Shown here piece by piece: positions 1,445-37,490 of a stretch of DNA of 45,759 nt (its first letter is position 1; every line of letters begins with the position of its first letter). This DNA comes from Octopus bimaculoides. Taxonomy: Eukaryota. The translations under genes were made by a program, and so were the position numbers. The notes beneath the pieces were generated by a model that ran no database searches, was not told where the DNA came from, and worked only from the letters and a program-made list of their open reading frames with translations. The stretch lies in contig NC_069003.1 in NCBI RefSeq assembly GCF_001194135.2, positions 7,566,201-7,611,959 of the forward strand, in the 5' to 3' direction.

Positions 1445-1618
1445 CTTGAGTACAGTTTCGTTCCATGCAGTGTTTTACTTCCTTGCGATTGCCATCGCAG
1501 TGAGTCCTGTTTGGAAGGCAAATGCGGACCCTCTTTTGTCGGCCGTTACCGCAAGAGGTGGAACAGGGTGCCCAGCTGCTCCATTCGTCCCATTCTCCGT
1601 TCATTGGTGTCACGTCTT
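1445..1618 (-). CDS. TSP1 exon 16 (174 bp; 3' end uncertain)
   Basis: [58 protein letters not shown]; atttcag| ... G|gtgggg. A stronger phase-0 donor (AAT|gtaagt) lies at 1416. Confidence 0.82.
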
Positions 1619-1673
1619 CTGAAATAGATGACTTCTCTTTAATTACCAAAGTTGACAAAATGTCACAGGTGTT

Positions 1674-1712
<39 letters not shown>

Positions 1713-1715
1713 ATA

Positions 1716-1749
<34 letters not shown>

Positions 1750-2906
1750 ATCTATATCTATATATATATACATATTTATTCACACACACAATTTAAAAAC
1801 ATACAAATATGCATTTAAAATATAAATAATATTAGTTTACAGTTGTGTGCATGTGTGTANNNNNNNNNNNNNNNNNNNNNNNNNNNNNNNNNNNNNNNNN
1901 NNNNNNNNNNNNNNNNNNNNNNNNNNNNNNNNNNNNNNNNNNNNNNNNNNNNNNNNNNNNNNNNNNNNNNNNNNNNNNNNNNNNNNNNNNNNNNNNNNNN
2001 NNNNNNNNNNNATATATTTATTTATATAAGGGCATTATATAAATGTGGCTGTGGCCATGCTATGTGTATACATTTTTATCAATATTTAGCAGAAGCAACA
2101 GAGTGACTCAAGGTGAGAGAGCTTCATGCATTAGCACTTAGCACTTATATATAATATGGTCATGGGGAGATATTACCTAACTTGGAAGCAGGTGAGGGTT
2201 AGCAACAGGAAGAGCATCCAGACTTAGAAAAATCTGCCACAACAAATTCTGTCTGACCCATGCAAGCATGGAAAAGTAGACAATGAAATGATGATGATGA
2301 TGATGATGATGATATGACTAATTAATACCCATCCTTGTCATCAGGATTGTGTTACATACTCTAACGAAATTACATTAACAGAATCCCAAATATGTCCTCA
2401 GTTTTCGGTACAATTTGTAGAGACCACTTTGTTGTTTGAATAACTACTTAAATAGTAAATTTAGTATGTCATCACCATCATCATCGTCAACAGGTAAAAA
2501 ATAGTATTTAAAACTTAGCAAGTGTATAGTGAATATTTTCAAGGGCTTTCCTTACCTGTCTGACAAGATTTGTGCATGCATTCCTCCTCTTCAGTAACAT
2601 TTCCACGGCATCCAATACCCTTTGGCAAGCAGCTGCGAAACCTCCTTCGGCGGCCTGAGCCACATGATGATGAACAATGAGACCAGTCAGTCCATGATGT
2701 CCAGCTGTTATGGCTCTTGTTTGGTAATTCTAAAACATAAATATACATACATATACACACCTGTTTCTGCCTCTCTGTCTCACTCTCACCTTTCATTATC
2801 TGACACAAGGTCCCTTCTTCCAATGCCTCACCTCCTCTCAAAATTCCTTGTCTTGCAAGTTATTTAGTGACACTGTGTGTGTGTATATATATATATATAT
2901 ATACAT

Positions 2907-2938
<32 letters not shown>

Positions 2939-2988
2939 GTANNNNNNNNNNNNNNNNNNNNNNNNNNNNNNNNNNNNNNNNNNNNNNN

Positions 2989-3029
<41 letters not shown>

Positions 3030-6000
3030 TATACATATATATTTACTTATATACACGCACGCACACACACACACACATATATATATACATAAACACACAT
3101 CTGCCTATATATGCATGTGTATAATCTTTTATTTGTTTCAGTCATTTGACTGCGGCCATGCTGGAGCGCCGCCTTTAGTCAAACAAATCAATCCCAGGAC
3201 TTATTTTTTGTAAGCCCAGTACTTACTCTATTGGTCTCTTTTGCCAAACCACTAAGTTACATGGACATAAACACACCAACATCCGTTGTCAAGTGATGGT
3301 GGGGGGACAAACACAGATACACAAACACACACACACAAACACATATATGACAGGCTTCTTTCAGTTTTGGTCGGCCTGAGGCTATAGTAGAAGACACTTG
3401 CCCAAAGTGTCACACAACGGGATGAGAACCCGGAACCATGTGGTTGGTAAGCAAGCTACTTACCACACAGCCATGCTGGAGTGGCTGTGTGGGAAGAAGT
3501 TTGTTTCCCAACCATGTGATTCCAGGGGTCAGTCCCACTATGTGGAGCCTTGGACACATGTCTTTTACTACAGCCTTGGGCCAACTGAAGTGTTGTGAGT
3601 GCATTTGGTAGCTGAGTGAACTGGAGCAGCATGAAATAAAATATCTAACTCAAAGAAACAATGGGCCACCGGGAATCAAACTCTCAGCCCTACAATTGAG
3701 AGCCAAATGCCCTAACAAGTAACTCGTGTGCTTTCACAAAATATTATACGAAACCAGAAATATAAAACTGACCCCCCCACCCCAGAAATATCAGATGTGA
3801 CCAGAATTTAAAGAGACCTAAAATCCATGAAAATTACAACAATGGAAATTTCACACTGAGGTGATAAACTTAATCTAGCACCAGATTTAAGGCCTTAAGA
3901 TGACCCTTCAGTGCCTTTAGCAGAGTCCACTCTGTTACAAAGCACCGGGCTGAAATCTCCACATTGAATACTGCTTTATCTGTCCCTTCTATCAGTCTTA
4001 GAGGCCCTGTAAAAAAAGGCCATAAATATTGCCCTTTTCTCTTGATCAAAAGATGAAAAATAATATTTACATTAGCTTTGCAAATGTACAGTGAATATTT
4101 TCAAAGGTTTTCCTTACTTGAGTGACAAGGTTTGTGCATGCATTTATCCTCTTCAGTAATATTTCCACGGCATTTACTGCCCTTTGGTAAGCAGCTGCGA
4201 AATCTCCTTCGTTGGCCTGAGTCACATGTAGTTGAGCAACTGGACCATTCACTCCATGATGTCCAACTGTTACGGGTCTTGTTGGGTAATTCTAAAACAT
4301 GAATTTACATTGGATGTGCTAATTAATATTCAATAGAAAAGCCACTTTTGTTGCTAATAGCTAATATATATAATATATAATGAACTTATTGTATACAGTG
4401 CTCAGGTGCACTGCAATTCATCAGAAAAAGTAACCAAAACTGCATGAAGAGCACATAGAATGACACACAAAATGGGAACAGTGGATGAATCATTTAAAGG
4501 GGGAAAAAGGAGAGGGCACCAGGTAAACTATTGCAAATTTTGGGATGCATGGAAATTTTGAAGTATGTAATATCCTGACAAGTAGTTTATTCCATGCTTC
4601 AGCAATTCTGAGTGTGAAAAAATGTTTCCGTAAGTCATAGGTGCTGTGTTGTTCTTTTTTTTATTTTGTAAGTATGTCCACGAGTGTTATATAGACATAT
4701 GGAATTCAAAAATGTGCTCAAGGTTTTTGTTGGAAAGATGGTGGATAATCTTGTGGGTGTCTGCCAAGTCAGTTGCCAGATGTCGGAGCTTTAATGTGTC
4801 CCTGCCCAGGGAAAGAAGACATTCAGAGTATGGTAGATGCCTGATAGAGGGTATTCATGTGGTTGCATATTTCTCAACAGTTCCCAGGGGATTGATATAC
4901 TGAGCAAGACAGAAGTTCCAGGCTGGTGATGCAAACTCTAAGTGTGGACGTACCATAGCCATATACAGCTTTAAATAGAAGACTGGAGAGTAGCTGACAA
5001 AGGTCTTACTGAGTAACACTAAGGCACCCTCAGCCATCTTGACAATTTTAGAGATGTAGTTTGACTAACACAAATCGCCACTGACAGTAATACCTAGGTC
5101 ATGTTCACTAACAGACTTCTTAAAATTGGTGTTATTGAGGGAGTATGTAAATGCTAGGTCTTTCTTCCCAGACTGCATGGTGAAGCACTTGTCCACATCT
5201 AGCTTGAGTTGCCAGTCTGTAATCCATTACTGTATTGTGTTTGTAAAATAGGTCGGGAATTCTTCTCAGCACCTTTTGAACGTGGTCATTGCCAGTGCCG
5301 CTTGACTGGCCCTCATGCCTGCAGCATGTAAAAGCACCCACCACACATTCAGAGTGGTTGGCATTAGGAAGGGCATCCAGCTGTAGAAACCTTGCCAGAT
5401 CAGATTGGAGCCTGGTGCAGTCATCTGGATCGCCAGTCCTCAGTGAAACCGTCCAACCCATGCTAGCATGGAAAGCGGACTTTAAACGACGACGATGATG
5501 ATATATGTGCACATTGTTATATAAGAGGCAAGATGTATATTTATCACCTGGTGCATCCATATATATGTGTGTATGGTGTGTATATGCACAAAAATCTGAG
5601 TGTATGCCATTGTTTAGAGAATATGCAATGTACTCACAATGGTTAGCATGATTTATTTCCATCCATCATGGCTACATGTGGTTTGTTACTGATCTCTGAG
5701 TGTTTTCATATTTAACTACTTCACAGCAATAATAATAAACAGTTGATTCCAGATACCAGATCTAATCTGTTTATTTTTGTAATAATGGAGATAATAAATA
5801 ATGTAAAATTCCCATCACACACATGTATATGTATTTCTATTTTAGTTGGATCTCTTAAGTTCGCTGATGTGGTACAGATTAATTGTGCAAATCAAGATGC
5901 AGATACTTTTCAATCAGAAAATTCTCAGCCTGCCAGCTGCGTGCAATATCACTGGCTGTTTTTTTTTATATTCTTTTATTTGTTTCATTCATTTGACTGC

Positions 6001-7208
6001 AGCCATGCTGGAGCACCGCCTTTAGTCGAACAAATCGACTGCAGGATTTATTCATTGTAAGCCTAGTACTTATGTGTGTGTGTATCTTTGTGTCTGTGTT
6101 TGTCCTTCCACTATCACTCGACAACCAGTGTTGGTTTGTCTGTCTCCGAAACTTAGCAGTTCGGCAAAAGAGACTGATATTATAAGCACTAGGCTTACAA
6201 AGAATAAGTGCTTGGGTTCATTTGTTTCACTAAAGGCAGTGCTCTAGCATGGCCACAGTCAAATGACTGAAATGTGTAAAAGAGTAAAAGAATAAGTAGC
6301 TGAGCATTTCACAGACACGCATACACATAATGCAGTTCCCAGCGAGATTCAGTGTTATATGGAATGTGACAAAGCTGGCCCTTTGAAATACAGGTACGCT
6401 TCATTTTTTGCCACCTGAGTGAATGGAGCTATGCAAAATAAAGTGTTTCCTTGAAAGACACAATGGCCACTGGGAATTGAACAGCTGACCTTATGACTGT
6501 GAGCCGAATACCATTCAGACATGACCAAAATTTTAAAAGACCTAAAATCAGTGACAATTACACCAATGGAAACAAACTTAATCCAGCACCACATTTAATG
6601 CCTTAAGATGACCCTGCAGTGCCTTTAGCAGAGTCCACTCTGTTACAAGCACCTGGGTGAAATCTTCACTTTGAATACTGCTTTGTCTGTCCCTTCTATC
6701 AGTCTTAGAGGCCCTGTAAAAAAGGTCATAAATATTGCCCTTTTCTCTTGATTAAAAAGAATGAAAAATAATATTTACATTAGCTTTGCAAATGTACAGT
6801 AAATATTTTCAAAGGTTTTCCTTACTTGAGTGACAAGGTTTGTGCATGCATTTTCGCTCTTCAGTAATATTTCCATGGCATTCACTGCCCTTTGGTAAGC
6901 AGCTGCGAAATCTCCTTCGGCGGCCTGAGTCACATGTAGTTGAACAACTGGACCATTCACTCCATGATGTCCAGCTGGTATGGGTCTTGTTAAGTAAATC
7001 TAAAATATATATATGGAAAGTGGATATTAAATGATGATGATGAATGTTATGATTTCACTAAGGCATAGTGGTACATATATATGTGTGTGTATATATGTAT
7101 ATATATATATACACACACATGTATATACATACACACATATATATATATACATACACATATATATATGCATGTATGTATTTATGTGTGTGTGTGTGTGTAT
7201 ATATACAT

Positions 7209-7245
<37 letters not shown>

Positions 7246-10200
7246 CGTATATATATANNNNNNNNNNNNNNNNNNNNNNNNNNNNNNNNNNNNNNNNNNN
7301 NNNNNNNNNNNNNNNNNNNNNNNNNNNNNNNNNNNNNNNNNNNNNNNNTGTGTGTGTGTGTGTGTGTGTGTGTATATTTGAGATAATAATCAATTAAGTT
7401 AACAGAAGATGGATTTGGTATAACTCTTTATACCAATTCCATCTTCTAAGGGCATCCAGCTGTAGAAACTCTGCCAAATTAGATTGGAGCCTGGTGTTGC
7501 CATCCGGTTTCACCAGTCCTCAGTCAAATCGTTCAACCCATGCTAGCATGGAAGGCGGACGTTAAACGATGATGATGATGATGATGATGATGTTTTCTTA
7601 ATTGATTCTTATCTCAAATAACACTGCAGAATTCCTGAAGTAAATCCAACAGAAATATGCCCAAACTGAGGATGACACCAGGTAACCCAAACTGTGCCAG
7701 TGCTTTACTCAACACATCAGCGTGCAGGTGGCACGTAAAAAAACAAATTTGAGCGTGGCCATTGCCAGTACCGCCAGACTGGCCCTCGTGCCGGTGGCAC
7801 ATAAAAGCACCCACTACACTCTCAGAGTGGTTGGCGTTAGGAAGGGCGTCCAGCTGTAGAAACTCTGCCAGATCAGTGCCTTTAGCAGAGTCCTTTCTGT
7901 CACAAGCACCTGGGTGAAATCTCCAGTTACAATATAGCTTTATTCTTTCCCTCCACCCGCCACTCCATGAGTCTTAGAGGTCCTGTAAAAAGGGTCATAA
8001 ATATTGCCCTTTTCTCTTGATTAAAAAAATGAAAAAAATATTTACATTAGCTTTGCAAATGTACAGTTAATATTCTCAAAGGTTTTCCTTACTTGAGTGA
8101 CAAGGTTTGTGCATGCATTCATCTTCTTCAGTAATATTTCCACGGCATTCACTGCCCTTTGGTAAGCAGCTGCGAAATCTCCTTCGGCGGCCAGAGTCAC
8201 ATGTAGTTGAGCAACTGGACCATTCACTCCATGATGTCCAGCTGGTATGGGTCTTGTTAAGTAAATCTAAAACACACATATATATGGAAAGTGCACATTA
8301 AATGATGATGATGATGATGATGATGATGATATATGTTACGATTTCATTTAGGCATAGTGGTATGTATATATGCATGTATGTATATATATATATATATATA
8401 CATATATATATACACGTGTGTGTGTGTGTTTATATGCAAGGTTTGATCAATAAGTATCCGGATTGTTGCTATAGCAACTAAGCTAAAGCACACAGAGTGA
8501 AGCAGCTTGGCAAATATTGACCTTAAACTCTATAGTGCCACACTGTGGGATTGAACCTGGAACCATGTAGCTGGGCGAAGACGAAAATGGCTGCCATTTA
8601 AGCGATGTCATTTTTCATATGTGATGTAGTCATCATCATCATCATCGTTTAACGTCCGCTTTCCATGCTAGCATGGGTTGGACGATTTGACTGAGGACTG
8701 GTGAAACCGGATGGCAACACCAGGCTCCAGTCTAATTTGGCAGAGTTTCTACAGCTGGATGCCCTTCCTAACGCCAACCACTCAGAGAGTGTAGTGGGTG
8801 CTTTTACGCGTCACCCGCACGAAAACGGCCACGCTCGAAATGGTGTCTTTTATGTGCCACCCGCACAAGCCAGTCCAGGGGCACTGGCAATGATCTCGCT
8901 CGAAAATCCTACGGGAGCCAGTCAGGCGGTACTGGCAACGGCCACGCTCAAAATGGTGCATCTCATGTGCCACCCGCACAAGAACCAGTCCAGGGGCACT
9001 GGCAACGATCTTACTTGGCTTGCCGGGTCTTCTCACGCACAACACATTTCCAAAGGTCTCGGTCAGTAGTCATCGCCTCGGTGAGGCCCAATGTTAGTGG
9101 TGTTGCAAAATTTGTCTTGTGCTTATTAATTTCCATTATGTCCTTTATATCGTATCAAAATTTCATGCATCTATCTGTAAAGTTAAGGAAGTTATCAAAA
9201 ATTGAACCCATCAGGAACTTTTGGGACACTGTATTATACTAAACCAGAAATGTAAACTGAAAATAAGGAATATCAGATGTGACCAGAATTTAGAGAGACC
9301 TAAAATCTGCGACAATTATGACAATGGAAATTTCACACTGAAGTGATAAACTTAATCCATTGCAAGGTTTAATGTCACAAGATGACCCTTCAGTGTGTTT
9401 AGCAGAGTCCACTCTCTTATAAGCACCTGGGTGGAATCTCCAGTTTGAATACAGTTTTGTAAAAGGGTCATAAATATTGCCCTTTTCTCTTGATTAAAAA
9501 AATGAAAAATAATATTTACATTAGCTTTGCAAATATACAATGAATATTTTCAAAGGTTTTCCTTACTTGAGTGACAAGGTTTGTGCATGCATTCATCTTC
9601 TTCAGTAATATTTCCACGGCATTCACTGCCCTTTGGTAAGCAGCTGCGAAATCTCCTTCGGCGGCCTGAGTCACATGTAGATGAGCAACTGGACCATTCA
9701 CTCCATGATGTCCAGCTGGTATGGGTCTTGTTGAGTAATTCTAAAACATGAATTCATATTAGATGTGCTAATTAATATTCATTAGAAAAGCCACTTTTTG
9801 TAGCTAAGAGCTAATTTATTCACAGCCCACCAGCTTCTTATGTTATCATTTGCTGTTTAACTAGTATTATGCTACATCAATTTCACTGATTTTCAATCTG
9901 GTTTTTAGTGGCTGGCTAGCAACTGCTGATGATCCATAGCTTATGTTGAAATCATGTGATACATTAATGCTAACTGCCAGTTGAGGAAAATTTTGTCAGC
10001 TAATATAGCCTGTGCTTTCTAGCATTTATCGTCTATATAAGAATATTTGTTGGGATGTTCACTGCAGTCGAAGGCCTTCTAAGCAGCACATCCAATTTAG
10101 GTTAGATGGTTAATATATATATATACAGGGTGTCCACAAAGTATAGGTACATTGAGTAAATATCATAACATAAACAATTAAATATAAGAAATAATAATTT

Positions 10201-10329: not shown

Positions 10330-10364
<35 letters not shown>

Positions 10365-10751: not shown

Positions 10752-10792
<41 letters not shown>

Positions 10793-12176
10793 NNNNNNNN
10801 NNNNNNNNNNNNNNNNNNNNNNNNNNNNNNNNNNNNNNNNNNNNNNNNNNNNNNNNNNNNNNNNNNNNNNNNNNNNNNNNNNNNNNNNNNNNNNNNNNNN
10901 NNNNNNNNNNNNNNNNNNNNNNNNNNNNNNNNNNNNNNNNNNNNNNNNNNNNNNNNNNNNNNNNNNNNNNNNNNNNNNNNNNNNNNNNNNNNNNNNNNNN
11001 NNATATATGTGTGTGTGTGTGTGTGTGTGTGAGTAAAAATAAATACAAAAAAGGGGTTTTGTATGATCGTGTATAGAGGAATATATTATTTTATTTAAAA
11101 GAATTCCAACTCTGTCTGTTTTTTATGTTTTATTTATACTCTTGTAAAATTCATGTGGGATATAGAATATGGAATATATAATATATAATATAAAATATAA
11201 AAATGGATGGTACAATGAAATGAAGTATTGAATGTCTTATTGAATATATGGAATATGTCTTATTGAATATATGAAATATTGAGTGTTCAATATAAAGGAT
11301 TAAGTATATAAAGGCGAATACGTATTTTCTATACCTTGTGGTATTTCATCATGGCCGGTACGACAGTTAAAACTGATGGCAGATAGACAAAAGAAATCTC
11401 CATCACCAGAAATATAGCACAATTGTTTCCAGCCATGTTAGGCCAGCATCTTGTTGCTGTATCAGTAAGCTTGCCATAAACTCCAAGCAGTATGTCTCTC
11501 CCAGAGTGTAATAATTACTGTTAGTATTTTTAAAAGACCAACACAGATAAAACTTTAATGTCCAGTAATAAAACCCGTCTGTTAACTGTTTACGGGCATT
11601 GTCAGTTACTTCTTCATGCAGCCCGAGAAACACATTTTCATTCATCAACTCAACCTGTCCTCACCTCAGACCAGCCAACAAACCGACTCGCAACAACACC
11701 TAAAATCTATCATGAATACAACAATGGGAATTTGATACTGAAGCGATAAACCTAAATCCATCACCAGATTTAATGCCTCGAGATAACCTATCTGTGCATT
11801 CAGCAGAGTTCAATCTGTTACAAGCACCTGGGTGAAATCTCCAGTTTCAATATAGCGTCATCCCTCCCTTCAATCAGCCTTAGAGGCCCTGTAAAAGGGT
11901 CATAAATATTGCCCTTTTCTCTTGATTAAAAGATAACAGATAATATTTACATCAATTTGGCAAATGTACAACAAATATTTTCAAGTGCTTTCCTTACCTA
12001 TTTGACAAGGTTTGTGCATGCATTCTTCGTCTTCAGTAATGTTTCCTTCGCATTCACTACCCTTTGGTAAGCAGCTGCGAAATCTCTTCCGTTGGCCTGA
12101 GTCACATGTAGATGAACAATGTGACCATTCACTCCATGATGTCCAGCTGCTGTGAGTCTTGTTTGATAATCCTAAA

Positions 12177-13203: not shown

Positions 13204-14984
13204 AGAGAGAGAGAGAGAGAGAGAGAGATACAATATACACTCACACAGTCAAATGTTCATGGTTACCATCCTGGTAGAATGCAATCAATATACACCACAA
13301 ACAGTATACAAACAATACAAACAAGCAACTACAACACACAAACAAACACCACACTATTACCAGACAACACAACCATGCCATTCCACAACCACTACACATC
13401 ACGACATTACCCTATACTACAACACAACACACTACTAAATTCAACTGAACAAATGATCTGTGGAATACATCTAGTTGCTTCAATAACTACTTACATAGGA
13501 ATCTTATTCTTTTCTGCTCTAGGCACAAGGCTCGATTTTTACCTTGCTTGGAAACAAATAGGGGTTGCCACTGGGAAGGGCATCAGGCTGTAGAAAACTC
13601 TGCCCTAACATACTCCTGTCTGACCCAAGCAAGCATGAAAAAGCAGGTGTTAAAATGACAATGATTAATTTATTAGATTCAGGTTTGTAGTTTTAGTTAG
13701 ACAGGTATTTTTTATAATGGCTGCACCACAATGGAATGAGTGGCAACTCATTAAAATTGCTGCCCTAATATTGATAGGGAAAGGGCCATGCTCTGGCACT
13801 CTGTCGTTGTGATGACAAAGATTCCAGTTGGTTCAAGCAACAGGATGGCCTGCTCATGAAATTAACGTGCAAATGGCTGACCACTCTACAGACACGTGGA
13901 CGCTTGAAGTAGTTCTCAAGGAGATTCAGTGTGACAAAGCTGGCCCTTTGAATTACAGGTAGAATTCATTTCACCAGCTGAGGTAAAGTCTCTTGCTCAA
14001 GGACACTAAGCCTTGTGAGTGGATTTAGTAGACGGAAACTGAAAGAAGCCTGTCATGTATATGTATGCATGTGTGTGTGTGTGTGTGCATGTCTTTGTCC
14101 CCTTACCATTGCTTGGCAATTGGTGTTGGTGTGTTTACATCCCCATAATGTAGCGGTTCAGCAAAAGAGACTGACAGCGTAAGTACCAGGCTTAAAAATA
14201 AAAGAAGCACTACGGATTATTCATTTGGCTAAAAATTCTTTGAGGCAGTGCCCCAGTATGGCCACAGTCCAGTGACTGAAACAAGTAAAAGATAAAAGGT
14301 AAGATACAATATGAGTTGTGTGTGGCAAGGATGGGGTGGCGGTGGTGGATGGAGCATATGCAGTTTTGATTGGACCAAAGCAGAAACAAAACCAATTACA
14401 TCTAAACTAAGATGTATCAGATGATTGGATATTAGCCCTTAAGGGTAACGAGATGAAATACATTCTTGAGTAAGAGTAAATATCTCATCTCATAGAAAAA
14501 CCTTAGAGGCATGAAACTTTATTCGATGTTCAAAAACATCACGGTAAACCAGAAATAAGACTACAAAAAGAAATTCATTTCAAAGGTAGCTAAGAATAGA
14601 TGAGAATTTAAAACAGATCAAAAATCTGTGACTACTACAATATCATTTGCTTATGTGAACTTTGCAAATGTACAAGTGAATATTCTCAAGTGTTCTCCTT
14701 ACCTGCTTGACAAGATATGTGCATGCATTCTTCGTCTTCAGTAATGTTTCCCTCGCATTCACTACCCTTTGGTAAGCAGCTGCGAAATCTCTTTCGTTGG
14801 CCTGAGTCACATGTTGATGAACAATGTGACCATTCGCTCCATGATGTCCAGCTGCTGTTGGCTTTGTTCTGCAATTCTAAAATATACAGATATACATGTA
14901 TGCTGTTTTCCTGTTATTCTTCTTGGTTTACATACGTATGTACATACATACATACATATATACATACATATAAATAACTGATAA

Positions 14985-15051: not shown

Positions 15052-16238
15052 TATAATAAAACAAAGATTGGAAAATTTGGTATATTTTTCAATTTCATGT
15101 TACACGGAGGCCAGACGAAATGTCAAACAGAAATCTGTGGGATAGAATGAACCAAACTTCTATCATTGAAGAAATTCTGAAAAGGAAATGGGGCTGGATC
15201 TCCAAATAGCATTGCAGGACAAGTGTTAAACTGGCCACCTGAAGAAAAGCAATCGGTCTCCTTTGATCTGAAGTCAAAGGCGTAACCCAAGACTGCATCT
15301 TCTGGCATCAAATGGTCATGACCCCGTGTTCCTTACTGTGTAATGTGGACTAAAAGGAATTTATTTCAGGTGAGACCAAGAATAGACGAGAATTTAAACA
15401 GACCAAAAAAAAAAATATATATATAATAAACTGTGACTGTTACAACAATTTCTATTTTTACAAGAACTTTGCAGATGTACAATAAATATTTTTAAATGCT
15501 TTCCTTACCTGTGTGACAACGTTCATGCATGCATTCTTCCTCTTCATTCTCACCTCCCTGGCATTTACTGCCCTTTGGTAAACAACTGCGAAATCTCTCT
15601 CGGCGGCCTGAGTCACATGTAGTTGAGCAATGAGACCATTCACTCCATGATGTCCAACTGCTATGGGTCTTGTTGGGTAATGCTAAAACATACACATACA
15701 TATATATAAGGGTGGCTGGCTCGCAATTTTACAACCGAAAGGCAGAAATATATATATGTGACTGAGGCTGTGTTCTCAGTCACTTTAGTGATGTATGTAT
15801 GTATGTATATAAACAATTGTAGCATGGAAGGTGTTTATAAGCCATTTAAAATAACACACAAAAACCGTTAGATTCACTTTAAATGTTGAAGTGAATCTGA
15901 CGGTTTTTGTGTGTTATTTTAACCCTTTAGCATTTAAACCGGCCATATCCGGCCAAAAGTATTCTGCCTATTCTATGTTCAAACTGACCAGATCTAGTCT
16001 TTCACACCAACCCTACAATAACATTTTAAAAATTAACAGCTACCTCATCAAAATCTCATAGCTACAAGATAATGCATGATTACTTCAAAACAATGTGGAT
16101 AAAAAAGCATTAATTATGGCAGAATAATGTGAACACTAAAGGGTTAAATGGCTTATAAACACCTTCCACGCTGCAATTATTTTTGTTCCAGAACACGATC
16201 TCAGATCAAGTCACTTGCTGTGCAAGTACATCTCCGTA

Positions 16239-24017: not shown

Positions 24018-24101
<84 letters not shown>

Positions 24102-25290: not shown

Positions 25291-25323
<33 letters not shown>

Positions 25324-25665
25324 CATATATACGACGGGCTTCTTTCAGTTTCCGTCTACCAAATCCACTCACAAGGCTTTGGTCGGCCTGAGGCTATAGT
25401 AGAAGACACTTGCCCAAGATGCCACGCAGTGGGACTGAACCCGGAACCATGTGGTTGGCAAGCAAGCTACTTACNNNNNNNNNNTTTGACTGTGGCCATG
25501 CTGGAGCACCACCTTTAGTCGAGCAAATCGACCCCGGGACTTATTCTTTGTATGCCTAGTATTTATTCTATTGGTCTCTTTTTGCCGAACCGCTAACTGA
25601 CGGGGACATAAGCATACCAGCATTGGTTGTCAAGCAATGCTAGGGGGACAAACACAGACACACAA

Positions 25666-25698
<33 letters not shown>

Positions 25699-28600
25699 CA
25701 TATATACGACGGGCTTCTTTCAGTTTCCGTCTACCAAATCCACTCACAAGGCTTTGGTCGGCCTGAGGCTATAGTAGAAGACACTTGCCCAAGATGCCAC
25801 GCAGTGGGACTGAACCCGGAACCATGTGGTTGGCAAGCAAGCTACTTACCACACAGCCACTCCTGCGCCTACATTTTCAAATTTTTCTTTAATTTAACAG
25901 TAAATTATACAGCATAGTTAGTTAGTTAACTAACTAATTATACTGTATAATTAACTATTAAATTAATGAAAAATTTGAAAATGTACCAGTCTCCACATTC
26001 TTTGTAATTGTTTTGTAGTAACATATGTGTAGTAACAAGACTTGCTAGAAATAGCAGCCAAATCTTCCTTATATATATTATCTACTACCTTCTGTATGTA
26101 TGAGTTAAAAATGGGGGCCACTATATGATAGAAGAAATTAAAATTAAAGCATAAATGAGAAAAATATGCCAAAAAAAATTTGGTTTCCATGAATTCTATA
26201 TTTGTGCGTCGTTAGTAATGGAAGTAAAATTCGTAAAAGAAATGGAAATGAAAAGAAAACAGAAAATCACATTGTCTCTTTTCTCTCCCACAAAAACACA
26301 CATAATGTGACACACAGACACACACACACACACACACACGTGCATGTGATACAAACACATGTACATACATAGGTACAAACATTCTCATTCTACATACCAC
26401 TTCAAATAATCATGGCTGCAATTTTATTGCTCACAGCTTCATTTAGACTCCAAGCCATTTGCTTTCATTCACAAATAAAACTTCTACTTAACCATCGGAT
26501 TTCCACAGTTTATGGCTGCTTCAGTGTAATAAGTGGAGATGTATGGCTTGGTGGTCGGTGGGGTGGGGGGTCATCTTTTTATCTAATATCTTTCACTTGT
26601 TTAAGTCATTAGACTGTGGCCATGCTGGGGCACTGCCCCGAAGGATTTTTAGTCGAATGAATTGGCATCAGAACTTAATCTTTTGTTAAGCCTGCTATTT
26701 ATTCTGTTGGTCCCTTTTGTCAAACTGCTAAGTTACTGGGATGTAAACACACCAACACCGGTTGTCAAACGATGGTGGGGGACAAACACAGATACAATGA
26801 CACACACACATAAATGACAGGCATGGAAGGCAGACACTAAGCAATGATGATGATGATGATGATGATGCATTTGAATATGTTTTGTGTTCAGGCCTCCACT
26901 CAATGAAGATTTGTAAGCAAAAGTGTAAATACATGGTATAACTTTACTTATTAGCAAAAGTTATAAATATGATCCTTACCTACAAAACAGCTCTCCATGG
27001 CACAAGTTTCAACATCNNNNNNNNNNNNNNNNNNNNNNNNNNNNNNNNNNNNNNNNNNNNNNNNNNNNNNNNNNNNNNNNNNNNNNNNNNNNNNNNNNNN
27101 NNNNNNNNNNNNNNNNNNNNNNNNNNNNNNNNNNNNNNNNNNNNNNNNNNNNNNNNNNNNNNNNNNNNNNNNNNNNNNNNNNNNNNNNNNNNNNNNNNNN
27201 NNNNNNNNNNNNNNNNNNNNNNNNNNNNNNNNNNNNNNNNNNNNNNNNNNNNNNNNNNNNNNNNNNNNNNNNNNNNNNNNNNNNNNNNNNNNNNNNNNNN
27301 NNNNNNNNNNNNNNNNNNNNNNNNNNNNNNNNNNNNNNNNNNNNNNNNNNNNNNNNNNNNNNNNNNNNNNNNNNNNNNNNNNNNNNNNNNNNNNNNNNNN
27401 NNNNNNNNNNNNNNNNNNNNNNNNNNNNNNNNNNNNNNNNNNNNNNNNNNNNNNNNNNNNNNNNNNNNNNNNNNNNNNNNNNNNNNNNNNNNNNNNNNNN
27501 NNNNNNNNNNNNNNNNNNNNNNNNNNNNNNNNNNNNNNNNNNNNNNNNNNNNNNNNNNNNNNNNNNNNNNNNNNNNNNNNNNNNNNNNNNNNNNNNNNNN
27601 NNNNNNNNNNNNNNNNNNNNNNNNNNNNNNNNNNNNNNNNNNNNNNNNNNNNNNNNNNNNNNNNNNNNNNNNNNNNNNNNNNNNNNNNNNNNNNNNNNNN
27701 NNNNNNNNNNNNNNNNNNNNNNNNNNNNNNNNNNNNNNNNNNNNNNNNNNNNNNNNNNNNNNNNNNNNNNNNNNNNNNNNNNNNNNNNNNNNNNAGCTAT
27801 GAGATAATGCATGATTAATTCAAAACAATGTGAATAAACAAACTTCACATTTGACAGAGCAACACGAATGCTACATGGTTAAACCAGACATATCTGACCT
27901 CTCAAACCTACCCTACAATGTTACTCTAAAAACGAACAATCCCATCATTGAAATGTCGAAGCTATGAGATAATGCATGATTAATTCAAAACAATGTGAAT
28001 AAACAAGCATCACATTTGACAAAATAACCTGAATTCTAAAGAGTTAAGCCCTTAATGTCACAATTGCCAAGATAATATCACCTCCTTTCAACTTGATGGT
28101 ACAGCCTGATACTTCATCATCATCATCATCATCTTCTCTCTTTTCTAACTGGAGTGGCCATGTTTCTTTCCTTACAGTCCAACCCATGCCAGGATGTCCA
28201 ACCCACAGTCAATGGACATTAAATAATGATGAGGATGATGAGGATTTATATTGATGTCTTGTGAGTAAATTTGGCAGATGGAAACTGTGCGGAAGCCTGT
28301 TGATTATATATGTATGCTTATATGTATGTATATGTGTATGCATTTATGCGTGTGTGTTTCTCCATTATGTGGCAACAGACATTGGTTTGTTTACATCCCT
28401 GTAACCTAGCAGTTCGACAAAAATGATTGATAAAAGAAGTCAATTTGTTTGATTAAAACCTTCTTAAGCAGTGCCCCAGCATGGCTGCAGTCCAATGATT
28501 GAAACAAGTAAAAGACAAAAGATACATATATACACACACATACAAACATATATGTGTATATAAATGACGAAAGAACAGAAAATTATGCAATGAGCTTCAT

Positions 28601-28958: not shown

Positions 28959-29025
<67 letters not shown>

Positions 29026-30057
29026 CACAGCCAGAGAGAGAGAGAGTGAGACAGAGAGAGACACACACACACACACATATGCAGATACATGCATGCACAC
29101 ACACACACACACACATACACACACACACACACACATACACACACACACACAGATAGGTTGATAGACAGATAAACAAATAGTTTGACATAGAAAAATATTC
29201 CAGCAACTTAGCAGTTTGGCAAAAGAGAAGTAGTGGCTCGACCTGGAGAGACTCCCTGATCTCCGAACCATGAACCCTATTAGGTAATATTAATACTGAG
29301 ACTCTTGGGCAGAATCTCATTTCGGTGCCTTGTATTCATGATTGTATACTTTCGGTCCTTAATTTCAATTCTGAATTTCTAACCTTGTTTTGTATTATGT
29401 GGAAACAAAACAGCTGTAACCATTAGAGGGAACAGGTGTTTTTCAAAATAAAAACCTTTTTCAAGAAAATCATTTCAAATACATGCTTACCATGGACACA
29501 GAGAGACAGGACACAGGGTCCGACCTCTTTGACAACACCAATACACGAAGAGCTATTCAGCAAACAGACGCGATTTCTGCTGCGATGACCATTACCACAT
29601 GTCACTGAGCAAACTGACCATTCATTCCACGGAGTCCACTCTAAAAGAAGAAAATTGTGAACAGATGACCATTATTAAATTGTATTAATTCGATGTTGGT
29701 TTACAGCAACATAAAATCATAGATATGCATAAATTTATGTATGCAATTGTCTACAAATGTGTATGTAGACACACCCTCTCATTTTCCTTATTTGTGTATG
29801 CATATATATATATATATATACCAACATCTGCCACGACTACGATTTCACTTGGCTCGATGGGTCCTCTTCTGAAGCACATCATATTGCCAAAGGCTTCAGT
29901 CATTTGTCATTGCCTCTGTGAGGCCCAATGCTTGAAAGGTGCTTTTTATGTGCCACAAGCACAGGAGCTAGTTACAGGACATCAGTATCGGTCACATTGC
30001 CTCCGTGAGGATCAATATACATACATATATACATATATATATATGTATATATATATG

Positions 30058-30119
<62 letters not shown>

Positions 30120-33100
30120 CATGACAAGTTTCTATCAGTTTCCACCTACCAAATCCATTCACAAGGCTTTGGTTGGCCCAGTGCTATAGTAGAAGACACT
30201 TGCCCTAGGTGCCACAAAGGAGGATTGAACCAAAGACCATGTGGCTGGGAAACAAACTTCTCTCCACCACACAGCACAGCCATGTCTTCCCCCCTTAGCA
30301 GCAGTATATATCTGATGTATGATAGTAGTATTAATGCTGCATAACTGTACAGAACTATACAGAATCTTCCTCGGTAGCCCCACATCCACCGGCCATCCAT
30401 ACCTGACTTCGTTATTACTTCCCCACTCTTTAATTATTTGTATTATCCAAGTGTGACCTTACCTGAATCACAGTGTCGTTCCATGCATTGCACAGTTTCT
30501 GTAGAAAAACCAATGCAGTGTGAATTTAAACAAACACGCTCCCTTCGCTGGATACCATAACCGCATGAGACTGAACATGCTGACCAGTCATGCCATGCCT
30601 TCCATTTTCCAAATGAAAACACTGTTGTTGCTTTTGTAGTTGTTTTTGGTGGTGGTCTTGTGGGTAAACTTTTTATTTTTATTTTTATTGTTGGGTTTGC
30701 TGTTGTTGTTGTTGTGGTCGGTTTTGCTGCTGTTGTTGTTATCGGATTTGTTGCTTTTGTTTGTTTTGTTGTTATCGTGATCACTTTTGCTGTTATTCTT
30801 TTCACTAAGAAAAAAAAGAAAATCAAATAAAAGAAAATGTGGAGTTAAGTCACTGAAACAGTAATACTTGCAAAATTTCAACTACAAATAGACACAAACA
30901 CACAAACACACAAACACCATAGCACATGACATTGGATCTTCCGTGCTTGACAACAAGAATTCAGTTGTTTGACCAAGTGAATTAATTGTTCCTGAATTAA
31001 TGAATAAACAACTGTTTATTTGTTAATTCAAAGTATCGTGAAGTACTTGCTCAAAGTACCGTGAAGTGGGGCTGAACCTGGAACCATGTGGTCAGGAAGC
31101 AAGATTCTTACCACGCATGATATGTACATATGTATGTATGTATATATCATCATAATCATCATCATCAAACGTCTGTTGTCCATGCTGGCATGGGTTGGAC
31201 GGTTTGACTGGGCTGTCATGCTGGAAGGCTGCACTAGACTCCAGTCTGATTTGGCTTGGTTTTCTACAACTGGATGCCCTTCCAGATGCCAACCACTCTG
31301 AGAGTGTAATGGATGTTTTTATGTGCCACTGGCACAGATACCATTTGCATGACATCAGGGTGCTTTTATGTGCCACCTGTATGGGTGCAAATTTGCTTGA
31401 CACCAGTATTTTTCCCAATCGTGATTTTGCTCAGCTTGATGGGTCTTCTTCTCAAGCATAACATAATGCCAAAGGTCTTGGTCATTGCCTCCGTGAGGCC
31501 CAACACTCAAAAGGAATTCAGCCACTTTGCTTCTGTGAGGTGCAACACTCAAAAGGAACTCAGACACTTTGCTTCCACTTTCTTCGTCCATACACATCAC
31601 ATGACCATACCAGCGCAGTCGTCTCCCTTGCATAGCCCATCTGAGGCCTCTTATGCCTAACTTTTCTCTCAAGATGCTTACACTCTGTTGAACATGCACT
31701 CTGACATTGCACCTCCAGCAAAGCATACGGGCTTCATTTCTTCCAAGCCTATGCATGTTCTCGGCTGTCACAGCCCATGTTTCACAGCCATGCACTTAGT
31801 TGCTTTCAACTAAGTAGGGGGAGTATTTGACGGGGTGGTGAGGTGATTTTTATGCCAGAGTCAAGCAGAGGCAGAGGTGTCTTGCTATAGAGAAGATACA
31901 CGGCTACCCTGCGTTTATATAAGGGCTGTAAAAAAAAAAGAATTTAAGGGGGGTAACAATTAACTGCCAGAGCAGTATAAGCATTTTTCCTTTACCTGAA
32001 TCACATGTCAGTAACATGCATGAAGCCATTTCAAGCAGGTCCCCCTCGCAGTGAAAACCATAAGGCAAACATACACGCGTGCGCTTTCTGATCCCGAGCC
32101 CGCAGGAGCTGGAACACTGTGACCATCCTTGCCATATGGTCCAGTGTCCTGTTGGAACAATTATTTTGACAGAAGCCACATTCTTCGTTGTTCTCGCTGC
32201 CGTAGTTGTTGTTGGTAATTCGGTTGTAGTTACTATAAAAAGAAAAAAACATTGAACAGACAATTGGAATTATGTAAGATGAATAAAATGGCAATTATTT
32301 AACTCAGTGTTTCTTTCTCAACCATTTTTTAGCTATGGGTCCTCTTAGTTCCTATTTTACTTGGATTGACCCCCACCACCACCATATATAGCCATTCGAT
32401 GTTTTAAAAAAAATCCTGTTATATTTTCATAATTAAATATCACTGTGAAGGCATGTGGCTCAGTGGTTACAGTACTCAGCTCATGATTGCAAGGTTGTGA
32501 GTTCGATTCCCAGTGATGCATTGTGTCCTTGAGCAAGACACTTTATTTCATGATGCTTCAGCCCACTCAGCTGGCAAAAATGAATAGTACCTGTATTTCA
32601 AAGGGACTGGCCTCATCATACTGAAACTCCCAGAGAACTAACTATGTTAAGGGTGCATGTGTCTGTGGAGAGCTCAGCCACATGCATATTAATTTCATGA
32701 GGGGGCTGTTCCGTTGATTGGACCAACTGAAGCCCTCATCATCGTAACCAGTGGAGTGCCAAGTATCACTAGGAATTGTATTAAAAAATTGAAATATCTT
32801 GTGTAATGTAGAAGTACAACCAAAATATTGCACAAAATCTTTGGTTTCAAATTTTGGCACAGGGCCAGCAACTTCAGGGGAAGGAGTAAGTCAATTACAT
32901 CAACCTCAGTGTTCAACTGACACTTATTTTATTGACCCCAGAAAGATGAAAGGCAAAGTTGACCTTGGTGGAATTTGAACTCAGAACTTAGAGGCAGACG
33001 AAATGCTGCTAAACGTTTTGCTTGGTGTGCTGACAGTACTGCCCTCTGTCTGCCTTCTATTGCACCAAAATTTTAACAACAAATTATTATATGGATCTCT

Positions 33101-33596
33101 AAGGGTCTTGTGGACCTCAGCTGAGAACCACTGAGTTAACCCTTGTTATTTTTTATCATTTACTTGGTTCAGTCACTGGGCCCTATCTTGAGAGTTTTAC
33201 TTGAACAAATTGGGCCCCAGTACAATTCTTACAGAATGCCTGCGTATGTCAATTTAAATAACACTGCACTTCATATTCAAAGCACTGATGAAGCTATAAA
33301 ATGTTATTCAGGCACTCAACTATGAGTCCACTGTGTCTTATAGCAGAAACAGCTGTAAGTCAATAAAGTTCATAAGATATTTGTTTATTCTCCTGTCATC
33401 TCATTTTCTTATTTTGATATCAAAAAATTAAATAATCTCAAAACCTAATAAAAATTAATGAGGAAAATTTCTGCAGCTTAATACTTTGTATTATATACAC
33501 AGCCAATTTAACTTTTGATTTTAGTGAAAAAAAAAAGATGTATTTACATACAACAGAAATCTATGTGTACATACACACATACATACATATATATAC

Positions 33597-33645
<49 letters not shown>

Positions 33646-36600
33646 GACAGTACTACTTTCATTTGAAATATGTGTGTGTGTATATATATATATGTATATT
33701 ATGTAAATATGCATGTGTGTGTGCATATATATACATATATGTATATGTATATATATATATGTGTATATATAAATACATACATATATATGTATGTATATAT
33801 ATAAATGTGTATATAATGTATGTGTGTATATGTGTGTATGTGTGTGTGTGCTGCACAAATGTATGTCAGTGTGATTTGTCAATGATGTTAGAATATTAAG
33901 TTTCACATCAGCTTTAGTTGAGTGTCACGCAAGCCCAGGGCAATTATCTGGCCATTAACCTTTATTGATATGAAACCTGGAAATAACGTACCTGCAAAAG
34001 ATGAAATTACAGCACAATGTCTATAATGTCTGCATACACACACACACACGTACAAACACTACTCATACATTTGTGAACACACATACGCCCACGTATTAAT
34101 CAATCTAGTTGATTGTGTAAAATTATATTGTGGTATATTTTCTTGTTTATATACAATGTAGTTTTGCTGAAACATTGTGTGGTATGACTTTAAAGAATGT
34201 AGTTGTGTAAGGCGGGAACAATGCGAGAAGGTCAAAAATAAACTACAAAAGGAAAAGGAAACATAACAAAGTGGCAGTTTTACTTTGTATTTCTATATTT
34301 CGGGGTGAAAACCCCTTCTTCAGGACATTTGGGAAAAAATTCATTGCTCAGAAAAAGTCGTTGTTCAGATGTGAGACAATGACTTTCTCCAACTACCACT
34401 TTAATCAAATGTCCTGAAGAAGGGGTTTTCACCCCGAAATATAGAAATACAAGGTAAAACTGTTGTTTTGTTTTGTTTTCCTTTTGTAATTTACTTTGTA
34501 CCTTCTTGCATTGTTCCAGCTTACACAACAAGCTTCTTTAAAGTTATTTAAATATGTAACAGCAAAAATAATATGTTGCAGTACTTGACTGTTAAAAAAA
34601 AAAAAAAAAATAATAATACCATGTGGCCTTTGTTATTTAATGACTTGGCCACTCCTGATCCATAAGGTCCCAATATCCACACAGTCGAAGAATGGATTGG
34701 AAGTGGTTGAGACTACCTTGAAGTCTGATCTTCATCGCCCTTTATGGGCAGAATAACAAGTTCAAGCCCCTGCTTCAGCAGTTTGAGGGAAGGATTTATG
34801 GTGACTCATAAAGGAGGTTCTGCAATTTTCAGTAAAACTTTTGTCATCATTCTCAACATCATCATTATTATTTAATATCTGGAAAATGGTGAACTGGACA
34901 AAATACTCAGTAGCATTTCATCCATCTCTATGGTCTGAGTTCAAACTCCACTGAGCTTGACTTTGCTTTTCATCCTTTCGGTGGGGTTGAGGAAATAAGT
35001 ACCAGTTGAGCACTGGGGTTGATGTAATTGACTTTACTCCTCCCACAAAATTTCAGGCCCCAAAATTTGCCTGAAACTACCAAATGTTGAACAATAATAA
35101 TAATAATCCTTTCTACTGGAAGCACAATGCCTCAAATTTTGAGGGCAAGGGATTAATTCAATTACATCAACCCCAGTGTGTGACTGGTACCTATTTAATC
35201 AACCGTGAAAGGATGAAAGGCAAAGTTGACCCTGGTGGCATTTGAACTCAGAATGTGTAGACAGACGAAATACCCCTAAGCATTTTGCGTGGTATGCTAA
35301 TGATTCTGCCAGCTCACCACCTTGCATAATAATAATAATAATAATAATGATGATGATGATGATGATGATGAGATTGTTAAGTTCCAGCTATCCCTCAAAA
35401 TACAATAGAATGGTTAATGCTTTCGACCATTGTTTCCGTTGGATCAGAATCAACTTAGGGGTCAACAACAATGGCAGCAATCAGGGAAAGTTTGGCTTTA
35501 GATGTCGAGGTGAAGTTCCCTAGACACTGACCTCGCATATATTGAACACTTGTGGATAAAGATAAAATGGCTTAATGACCCTTCAAAACTTACCAACACT
35601 ACAGCTCATTGCTCTGCAGACGATCTGTTGTGTCATGCTGCCTTCACAACGAGAACCTATCGGTAAACACAGCCGTTGTCTGTGCCTCTGGCCCATGCCA
35701 CATGTGACGGAACATGTGGACCATGTGTTCCATGCTGTCAAATGCCCTGAAGGCAGAGCTGCTGTTCCTGAAAATAAATAAATAAGTAAGTAGTCACAGG
35801 AATGGTTGTGTAGTAAGAAGTCCACTTCCAGACCATATGTTTTGGGGTTCAGTCCCACTGTATCTTTCATGGGTTCTTTTATATTTGATTTGTTTCAGTC
35901 TTGGAGAACTTTTGTCGAATGAAATGATCCCAGGACTTTGTTTTTCAATAGCCTGGTAGTTAGTCTATCAGTCTCTTATGACATACTAGTAAGTTATGGG
36001 GACGTAAACATACCAACACCAGTTGTCAAGTGGTGGGGGGTGACAAACACAGACACAAAGATTCACACACACACATACACACATGCACACAAGCACACAC
36101 ACATGCACACACACATACACACACACATGCACACAAGTACACACACAAGTATCTAGTTTATGTTTTCTGAATCAACTCACAAAACATTGGTAGAGAATGT
36201 AACATACAGTTCTATATATTTAAGAGATGAGGAATTATGTACATTATTTACATTAGACAGATATTTGTCCTCATCTTGTTTGTTGTTAACACAATGTTTT
36301 GGCTGATATACCCTCCAGCATTCAACAGGTGTCTTGAGGGAATTTTGAACCTGGGTTCTCATTCCTTAACCACTACGCCATATGCCCATGGGCATATGGC
36401 GTAGTGGTTAAGAGCGCTGGCTACTAGCCCCAAGATTCCGAGTTCGATTCCAGGCAATGACCTGAATAATAATAATAATAATGATAATAAAAATAACAAT
36501 AATAATAATAATAATAACAACAATAATGAAAAATACCTTAGAAATGAGAACCCAGGTTCCAAATTTCCCCCAAGACACCTGATGAAGGCTGGAGGGTATA

Positions 36601-37490
36601 TCAGCCGAAACGTGTTAACAACAAACAAGATGAGGACAAATATCTGTCAATTGTAAATAATGTAAATAAAGAATGTAACATATATTGACAATTCTAGTAC
36701 TGCAAATCTTGAAATGACCATCCACAGAGAATTACTTTACCTAAGTTACAGTGTCTCTTCAAGCAGGATGCCTTCTCTGAATGGTTGCCGGGGCAATAGA
36801 AGCCTGGTGGTAGACACATACGATGCCTCTTCCTGTGACCAATTCCACAGGATGTTGAACATGGAGACCACTTGTACCAGACAGTCCATTCACCGACGTG
36901 GGTCACTGATGGTGCTGAAAGAAGAAATTGAAATGAAGAGAGGAAGGAAAAAGCACATCTGGTTGGCTGAACAGGTATGAAGTTAATGTAGGGGACAACT
37001 GAAAAGAAGAGGATTGATTGGAACAGGGGATAGTGAAGAGGACTGCATATTATGAGTAATGGTTAGGGTGATGGTGGTGGTAGTTGTAGTTATAATGGAA
37101 GTAGTAGTAGTAGTAGTAGTAGTAGCAGCAGCAGTGGTTGTAATGGTGGCAGTGGTGGTTGTGATGGAAGCAGTAGTAACAGTAGTAATGGTGGTGATAG
37201 TTGTGGTAGTAGTAGTAGTAGTGGTGATGGTAGTGATGATGATGATAGTTGTGGTGGTGGTGGTGGTAGGGGTGGTAGTAGTAGTGATTGTAATGGTGGT
37301 GATAGTTGTGGTAGTAGTAGTAGTGGTGATGGTAGTGATGATGATGATAGTTGTGGTGGTGGTGGTGGTGGTGGTAGGGGTGGTAGTAGTAGTGATTGTA
37401 ATGGTGGTGGTAGTTGTGGTAGTAGTAGTAGTGGTGATGGTAGTGATGATAATGGTAGTTGTGGTGGTGGAGGTTGAGGTGGTGGTGGTG

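Follow-up and report, generated by a model that had tools for sequence, protein, structure and literature searches.

A thrombospondin type 1 repeat exon array in an octopus gene: conserved exon order and concerted evolution of four exons

Introduction

Properdin is essentially a string of thrombospondin type 1 repeats (TSRs), with one repeat per exon. Tandem exon arrays which evolve in concert or are alternatively spliced are represented by the kringle IV-2 repeats of apolipoprotein(a), the super-repeats of nebulin and the exon clusters of Dscam1. Some exon skipping is commonly shown by large arrays of symmetric exons. TSRs are encoded as a rule by class 1-1 modules (PMC7502776), and the super-repeats of nebulin have been described as a tandem exon array (PMC1553488). 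The present work deals with a stretch of 45,759 nucleotides (nt) of Octopus bimaculoides (NC_069003.1, positions 7,566,201 to 7,611,959), called here the window, whose minus strand carries the 5' two-thirds of a single gene with a long array of TSR exons. This is an ordinary TSR-array matrix gene, and its orthologue in Octopus vulgaris is annotated, uncharacterised and mis-named. Taken as a whole, it is probable that the locus is a single ordinary gene for a TSR rod of the matrix, with a stable exon count, gene conversion among some exons, and inclusion of exons by default with some skipping.

Results and Discussion

Identification and features of the TSR exons

The window was scanned in six frames for WxxWxxW...CSxxC and CSxxCGxG...RxR motifs, followed by a phase-aware search for AG and GT splice sites on both sides. 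The scan gave 16 TSR-like open reading frames (ORFs), every one on the minus strand. They correspond to 16 complete exons, E01 to E16, each coding for one TSR, bounded by AG and GT and of phase 1-1 (Table 1). The acceptors are of TTTTAG or TTTCAG type and the donors of GTAAG type, with one obvious pair per exon except for the E16 donor. This weak E16 donor (window 1445) is the same in O. vulgaris (position 54984 of the locus described below), all other TSR exons having GTAAG-type donors. Exactly 174 nt were found in 13 of the 16 exons, the different lengths being those of E03, E04 and E05, and the introns between TSR exons measure 632-7686 nt. The joined array product of 997 amino acids (aa) contains 16 stretches matching Pfam TSP_1 (PF00090) with E = 2.3e-127 and 415 bits against a cut-off of 21.6, a match far beyond chance. 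When three consecutive repeats were compared with solved structures, thrombospondin-1 TSR1-3 (7yyk, E = 3e-21) and properdin (E = 6e-18 to 5e-17) were matched. An Rfam search of the window gave no match.

The characters of the TSR superfamily were found together in the array, namely a TSP_1 profile match, six cysteines with a tryptophan ladder and an arginine-rich strand, and one phase 1-1 exon per module. Six cysteines are present in all 33 exons counted in both species, and a strand of RxRxR type is visible in the alignment. Three tryptophans per exon were counted in all 33 except E02 and V02, its O. vulgaris counterpart, which have two, and WxxW is kept in all window exons. The O-fucose sequon Cxx(S/T)CxxG occurs in 29 of the 33 exons and in 15 of the 16 from the window, while E09 to E16 have two N-glycosylation sequons apiece. 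O-fucosylation and C-mannosylation are predicted from their sequons. The net charge of the 174-nt window exons ranges from -2 to +11, and E04 reaches +13.

The exons differ widely in their relatedness. Between E01, E02 or E16 and any other 174-nt exon 79-98 positions differ, and between E06 or E07 and the later exons 50-65 positions, while the differences among E08 to E15 are 4-37 positions, E11 and E12 being separated by 4 of 174 nt. An initial annotation of this stretch had described 16 one-domain-per-exon TSRs of phase 1-1, 13 of them of 174 nt, with E11 and E12 four nt apart; all of this was reproduced, and the span of 36914-1445 is exact. Its joined model of 1551 aa was also recovered, as 554 codons of a large upstream exon plus the 997 aa of the array. 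A gradient from 5' to 3' had been drawn from divergent exons with Thr-rich linkers to a homogeneous cluster. The passage from divergent exons (E01 to E05, and also E16) to the homogeneous E08 to E15 is confirmed, but Thr-rich linkers are present in E03 and E04 only and not throughout exons 1-5.

Orthologous gene in Octopus vulgaris

The best cephalopod match of the TSR model is the O. vulgaris protein CAI9739278.1 (UniRef100_A0AA36BRK8, 1182 aa), which was automatically named 'disintegrin and metalloproteinase with thrombospondin motifs adt-1-like isoform X2' and is a singleton in a cluster look-up. Its locus, OX597836.1:10,039,142-10,118,564 (L001), is gap-free and comes from a long-read assembly. 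The entire window, with its introns, is colinear with L001 at a nucleotide identity of roughly 80-93%, and the synonymous divergence (dS) between the two is about 0.16. Judged by this comparison, the gene of CAI9739278.1 is the orthologue of the window gene. L001 possesses 19 TSR exons, all of phase 1-1, in the order V01 to V05, V05b, V06 to V16, V17 and V18. V17 and V18 lie beyond the point matching the window end and are followed by an Ig-like and then an EGF-like domain. The lengths of the V exons match those of the window, with 174 nt for the same exons, except for V03 and V04 (Table 1) and for V16, which has 177 nt.

Over the compared array, as read from the two assemblies, the number and order of TSR exons are the same in both species. 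The initial annotation had proposed a lineage-specific expanding array, a view to be given up if orthologues had the same exon count. Since the exons and their order recur in O. vulgaris, where four exons of the E11 to E14 type are also present, this expansion is not supported. Nor does the statement that no known gene was recognised stand, as an annotated though uncharacterised orthologue exists. The array probably grew by tandem duplication of exon-plus-intron units before the split from O. vulgaris, and exon number and order have stayed stable since that split.

The public protein model covers only a part of this array. CAI9739278.1 joins V01-V03-V04-V05b-V10-V17-V18, that is 7 of the 19 TSR exons with 12 omitted, and it is the longest product recorded for its gene. 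V10 is the only exon of the E06 to E16 block in it. The model starts at the second in-frame ATG (MLS...), 39 nt downstream of the conserved signal-peptide-like start MAALFKLYLFIWTMLS, and is probably truncated at the N-terminus, without signal peptide. In the O. vulgaris annotation, Iso-Seq, RNA-seq, protein alignments and ab initio predictions were combined by EVM and PASA (PMC10700109). Because the conserved upstream ATG was missed and the model is a consensus of mixed evidence, its exon choice is less trusted. Thus a signal peptide and as many as 12 coding exons are probably missing from the public O. vulgaris model. Nothing relevant came out of literature searches on this gene, on the function of CAI9739278.1 and on TSR expansions in cephalopods. 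Downstream of the TSR gene, its O. vulgaris neighbour (L001 71749-78308, minus strand), outside the window, codes for a 261-aa protein of the PhyH family (phytanoyl-CoA dioxygenase-like).

Concerted evolution of E11 to E14

In a joint distance matrix of the exons of both species, E06, E07, E08, E09, E10 and E15 were each nearest to their positional orthologue (differences in Table 1). E11 to E14 showed another pattern. They have 4-14 differences among themselves and V11 to V14 have 5-13, while 12-19 differences were counted between the species, so these exons cluster by species and not by position. Three sites in the four exons are fixed by species (4 of 4 copies each) and three more differ in at least 3 of 4 copies, while no site supports positional orthology inside E11 to E14 and V11 to V14. 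The upstream flanks of 200 nt behave differently, with 90% identity for E11 and V11, 97% for E12 and V12 and 87% for E13 and V13, against 68% for E11 and E12. In both species the flank types are ordered A-B-B-A, and the best match of each upstream flank is the one at the orthologous position.

By these comparisons the common ancestor already had four separate exons. As the upstream introns are 1:1 orthologous while the exons cluster by species, the near-identity of E11 to E14 is the result of gene conversion and not of recent duplication. The array thus shows what defines concerted evolution, paralogous exons more alike within a species beside orthologous flanks. The coding parts together with roughly 250 nt of downstream intron have been repeatedly homogenised within each species. 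The 'recent cluster' of the initial annotation has to be reinterpreted accordingly, since the flanks of E11 to E13 are 1:1 orthologous (87-97%) and the exons are alike through gene conversion. Orthologous flanks beside exons homogenised within a species are easily misread as recent duplication or copy-number expansion.

Sequence constraint on the exons

In 12 orthologous pairs of 174-nt exons, 189 codon-position differences were counted, and none of them alters a cysteine or a tryptophan. When the observed substitutions were placed at random, the probability that an exon retained its ORF and every cysteine and tryptophan was 0.001-0.16, and jointly for all exons 3e-18. No decayed TSR pseudo-exons were detectable in the window or in L001. 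Since the cysteines and tryptophans are conserved and decayed copies are absent, the substitution pattern indicates that every exon is maintained as a folding TSR and that selection preserves the scaffold. Such selection on every exon suggests that each of them is used in some mRNAs at least. The loops outside the scaffold change fast. The ratio of nonsynonymous to synonymous divergence (dN/dS) is 0.15-0.25 for E01, E08 to E10 and E16, and 0.8-1.4 for E02, E11 and E13 to E15, with small counts and with the values for E11 to E14 confounded by conversion. Exons included in and skipped by CAI9739278.1 showed no real difference in constraint, their pN/pS ratios being 0.41 and 0.52, respectively.

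N-terminal exons and predicted product

The order of the gene from 5' to 3' is a signal-peptide-like exon, a domain-less exon of 1662 nt and the TSR array. All of these belong to one gene, which continues past the window end after E16. In the first coding exon, of 49 nt, a TGA stands in frame immediately upstream of the ATG, and the amino acids of its peptide are identical in the O. vulgaris locus (about L001 9962-10010). Judged by hydrophobicity only, its N-terminus looks like a signal peptide. The ORF of 598 aa at 39492-41288 corresponds to the 1662-nt exon, itself of phase 1-1. The 553-aa region of this exon shows acidic runs of aspartic and glutamic acid and a Pro/Thr-rich mucin-like tail at its end, and it is 81% identical to residues 5-570 of CAI9739278.1. 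It gave no Pfam family match and no PDB relative. An exhaustive search with the N-terminal ORF of a representative library of 1.84 billion proteins returned two matches, both of low complexity, and large protein searches with the 598-aa ORF and its 328-aa part free of low complexity returned nothing, missing the O. vulgaris orthologue as well. The AlphaFold model of the 553-aa exon was unusable (pLDDT 32, pTM 0.17, from a two-sequence alignment). This region was seen here only in Octopus.

The possibility that a Thr-rich ORF of 203 aa at 36983-37594 is a mucin exon was dismissed: a phase-1 acceptor is absent, the sequence consists of a trinucleotide array, and the O. vulgaris counterpart has another length and composition. 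This poly-Thr/Ile ORF, on the minus strand like the gene, is an intronic (GTN/ACN)n trinucleotide array, of which 37172-37543 was reported by Tandem Repeats Finder.

The product would be a large, secreted and heavily glycosylated protein of the extracellular matrix or of adhesion. It is pictured as a multivalent TSR rod, C-mannosylated and O-fucosylated, which may bind glycosaminoglycans and matrix or cell-surface partners, and the length of the rod would set its reach and valency.

Assembly gaps and a 17th TSR exon

Ten runs of N are present in the window. All are intronic, mostly with (TA)n or (TG)n microsatellites at their edges, and none of the 16 complete exons is touched. Order and orientation across every gap agree with the gap-free O. 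vulgaris locus, and the joined reading frame is independent of gap lengths because each exon is of phase 1-1 on its own. The 3' end of a further TSR exon, E05b, lies at the edge of the gap 27017-27794. This remnant consists of 12 residues and a phase-1 donor and aligns to the end of O. vulgaris V05b (DVEDCVKESCFV/gtaagg), an exon of 192 nt at L001 26005-26196. The rest of E05b probably sits within the gap, since window position 27795 matches L001 25656 and V05b starts 349 nt further. With this exon end at the gap edge and the synteny with O. vulgaris, at least 17 TSR exons are counted in the window.

Four gaps had been named in the initial annotation as places where further exons may hide, and this was borne out for 27017-27794 and not for the other three, whose O. 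vulgaris intervals are without a TSR exon. The interval matching the gaps 21847-22359 and 23576-23918 is about 160 bp and holds no exon, and that matching 20857-21091 holds no TSR exon. An extra exon private to O. bimaculoides within these three gaps is formally possible.

Just upstream of E06, at window 21847-24447, about 2.4 kb with two gaps and low complexity have no O. vulgaris counterpart and represent an insertion or expansion. At 25110-25849, a 375-bp unit is repeated 2.0 times at 99% identity across a gap of 10 N (25475-25484), which is probably a scaffolding duplication or a tandem element resembling a short interspersed nuclear element (SINE). The ORFs 31355-31795 (minus strand) and 42762-42998 (plus strand) show motifs typical of the reverse transcriptase tail of long interspersed nuclear elements (LINEs), e.g. 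...RRLCWFGHVMH..., and tRNA-like repeats of SINE type are found near 1340-1230 and 21400-21300. From these LINE-tail ORFs and SINE-type repeats, the introns are rich in transposable elements.

Table 1. Features of the gene in the window, in order of transcription. Positions are those of the window, V numbers denote the O. vulgaris exons, and a slash marks the exon boundary at a splice site.
Feature	Position	Strand	Length and phase	Remarks
First coding exon	43590..43638	-	49 nt, ends in phase 1	encodes MAALFKLYLFIWTMLS; donor TCAT/gtaagt
Large exon	39635..41296	-	1662 nt, phase 1-1	acceptor ttttcag/ATAATTGG; donor CCACAG/gtaagt
E01, TSR	36741..36914	-	174 nt, phase 1-1	V01: 9 nt differences, dN/dS 0.15; E01 95% match to CAI9739278.1
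E02, TSR	35594..35767	-	174 nt, phase 1-1	first Trp to Leu (LTAWNTW); V02: 21 differences, dN/dS ~1.0; not in CAI9739278.1
E03, TSR with Thr-rich linker	31996..32232	-	237 nt, phase 1-1	V03 222 nt; dN/dS 0.38
E04, TSR with long Thr/Lys/Pro mucin-like linker	30463..30804	-	342 nt, phase 1-1	V04 354 nt; dN/dS 0.57
E05, short TSR without linker	29491..29640	-	150 nt, phase 1-1	V05 150 nt; dN/dS 0.35
Assembly gap	27017..27794		778 N	should hold the remaining ~155 nt of E05b
E05b, 3' end of 17th TSR exon	26980..27016	-	37 nt	GATGTTGAAACTTGTGCCATGGAGAGCTGTTTTGTAG/gtaaggatcat at gap edge
E06, TSR	21631..21804	-	174 nt, phase 1-1	V06 1:1: 15 differences; gap 21847-22359 ends 43 nt upstream of the intact acceptor
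E07, TSR	17059..17232	-	174 nt, phase 1-1	V07: 31 differences
E08, TSR	15509..15682	-	174 nt, phase 1-1	V08: 19 differences, dN/dS 0.23
E09, TSR	14703..14876	-	174 nt, phase 1-1	V09: 12 differences, dN/dS 0.25
E10, TSR	11998..12171	-	174 nt, phase 1-1	V10: 13 differences, dN/dS 0.17
E11, TSR	9567..9740	-	174 nt, phase 1-1	concerted group E11-E14
E12, TSR	8093..8266	-	174 nt, phase 1-1	concerted group E11-E14; 4 nt from E11
E13, TSR	6826..6999	-	174 nt, phase 1-1	concerted group E11-E14
E14, TSR	4118..4291	-	174 nt, phase 1-1	concerted group E11-E14
E15, TSR	2556..2729	-	174 nt, phase 1-1	V15: 17 differences
E16, TSR	1445..1618	-	174 nt, phase 1-1	weak donor AAG/gtgggg
Post-donor element, examples	9566-9522, 8092-8048, 21630-21600	-		conserved among paralogues

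Splicing of the array

By their phase 1-1 symmetry, any subset of the exons can be skipped in frame, as the initial annotation had pointed out. Symmetry alone is no evidence of regulated use, because TSRs usually belong to module class 1-1 (PMC7502776). The reading adopted here is that inclusion would be the default for most exons and that some in-frame skipping is likely, without a dedicated system of combinatorial or mutually exclusive use. The chances that some real skipping takes place are judged about evenly balanced, and a dedicated combinatorial system is quite improbable.

Several observations weigh against this reading or against parts of it. The polypyrimidine tracts of E06 to E16 are weaker, with 9-14 pyrimidines in 20 positions compared with 16-18 for E01 to E05. 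An element gtaaRgaaaRcMcttgaaaatatt... occupies the first 30-45 nt of the intron after E06 and E08 to E15 (nine exons) and is absent after E07. The copy after E06 is 70-87% identical to the others, while the exons themselves are 58-68% identical, and the element could be a shared intronic splicing element. Weak tracts together with this post-donor element are compatible with regulated exons. If CAI9739278.1 is real, with its 7 of 19 TSR exons in the longest recorded product, skipping would be the rule. The dN/dS values near 1 of E02, E11 and E13 to E15 could reflect relaxed constraint on rarely used exons. In addition, orthology is based on one other species, O. vulgaris, and the prediction of secretion and glycosylation on sequence motifs.

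The strongest competitor is a fully constitutive gene, with the complete set of 19 TSR exons in every transcript and a short O. vulgaris model that is purely an annotation artefact; this is a realistic possibility, held to be somewhat short of an even chance. It is favored by donors (GTAAG) and acceptors (TTTTAG) close to the consensus in nearly every exon, by the scaffold-preserving selection on every exon and by the conserved exon count, and it also fits the truncated 5' end of CAI9739278.1 and the mixture of evidence types in the annotation pipeline. The name 'isoform X2', however, implies at least two predicted isoforms for the nearest nr match, dN/dS is heterogeneous among the exons, and strict inclusion would depart from the general behaviour of symmetric exon arrays.

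The initial annotation had suggested the opposite extreme, in which the TSR exons are regulated cassettes, skipped combinatorially or used singly and variable in copy number. Tissues or cells would then choose subsets of the 19 exons through the post-donor element, the 7-TSR model of O. vulgaris would be genuine, and many isoforms of a matrix, adhesion or recognition protein would result, varying in length, charge and glycan load. Each combination of exons is in frame and the net charge varies from exon to exon, which would give such isoforms different properties. The 12 exons skipped in a model that is yet the longest product of the gene, the weaker tracts of E06 to E16 and the element common to nine exons point in the same direction, and the ectopic recombination active among E11 to E14 could also create copy-number variants. 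Against this, two species with a dS of about 0.16 do not differ in exon count or order, and the exons skipped in CAI9739278.1 are no less constrained than those included. CAI9739278.1, as an EVM and PASA consensus which misses the upstream ATG, may rest on protein alignments or ab initio prediction (PMC10700109). Mutually exclusive use in particular finds no support, since each exon codes for a whole autonomous domain, which does not force exclusivity, and introns of at least 632 nt give no steric exclusion. A search for a reverse-complement partner of the post-donor element in both species gave only chance-level matches of 9-16 nt (E >= 0.33), other intronic elements not being screened. Regulated cassettes are considered improbable on this evidence. 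Extensive regulated skipping, if true, would mean invertebrate isoform diversity built from whole TSR modules, and no present result requires such skipping.

A last alternative, that E11 to E14 arose recently by separate duplication in each species or were produced by faulty assembly of gappy short-read data, is very hard to credit. The clustering of exons by species and the N gaps in three introns around E11 to E14 would agree with it, but the long-read, gap-free assembly of O. vulgaris contains the same four exons, which excludes an assembly artefact. Moreover, the introns have similar lengths in the two species, and the flanks keep their A-B-B-A order and their positional orthologues in both.

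Comparison with known systems

The names given to the orthologue and its neighbours in protein searches (ADAMTS, SCO-spondin, hemicentin) reflect TSR content only. The only families found by Pfam in the window model are of TSP_1 type, and the 5' end of this model is complete back to the signal-peptide-like exon. In CAI9739278.1 Pfam finds TSP_1, a sub-threshold Ig_3 (25.6 bits, cut-off 30) and a weak EGF. The metalloprotease, disintegrin, spacer and PLAC domains of ADAMTS and ADAMTSL proteins were not found by Pfam in the window model or in CAI9739278.1. An ADAMTS 'adt-1-like' identity was rejected on the absence of the protease and disintegrin domains, and the public name is wrong because the protein is without protease. 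Similarly, the VWD, LDLa, TIL/EMI and cystine-knot (CTCK) domains of SCO-spondin were not found in either protein. Of hemicentin, the VWA, the long Ig array and the G2F domain were not found, CAI9739278.1 having one weak Ig_3 and one weak EGF. Proteins automatically named 'SCO-spondin-like' or 'hemicentin-1-like' from bivalves, gastropods, corals and dinoflagellates match the whole 997-aa array at 25-35% identity. The likeness of these invertebrate proteins is at the level of domains, that is of long TSR arrays, and the octopus N-terminal region is not shared.

Among described TSR proteins, properdin and the TSR stalk of thrombospondin-1 have in common with the octopus exons the WxxWxxW, CSxxCG and R-ladder pattern with six cysteines. 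These proteins have 3-7 TSRs, whereas the octopus gene has 19 TSRs, mucin-like linkers, a 553-aa N-terminal region and C-terminal Ig and EGF domains. No link to complement and no trimerisation domains were seen in the octopus protein.

At the level of the exon array, the closest parallels are the kringle IV-2 repeats of apolipoprotein(a), the super-repeats of nebulin and the Dscam1 clusters. In contrast to apolipoprotein(a), the octopus array shows no copy-number difference between the two species. In contrast to Dscam, each octopus exon codes for a complete TSR with its own six cysteines, so that the exons need not exclude each other. Pairing of the docking and selector kind was not found for the octopus post-donor element, and CAI9739278.1, a consensus gene model, holds one (V10) of the ten exons of E06 to E15 type. 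The likeness with all three systems lies in the repeated exon-plus-intron units of one module each, and in exons homogenised within a species beside orthologous flanks. In this respect the locus offers a clean example, on a small scale, of concerted evolution at the level of exons in a domain array.

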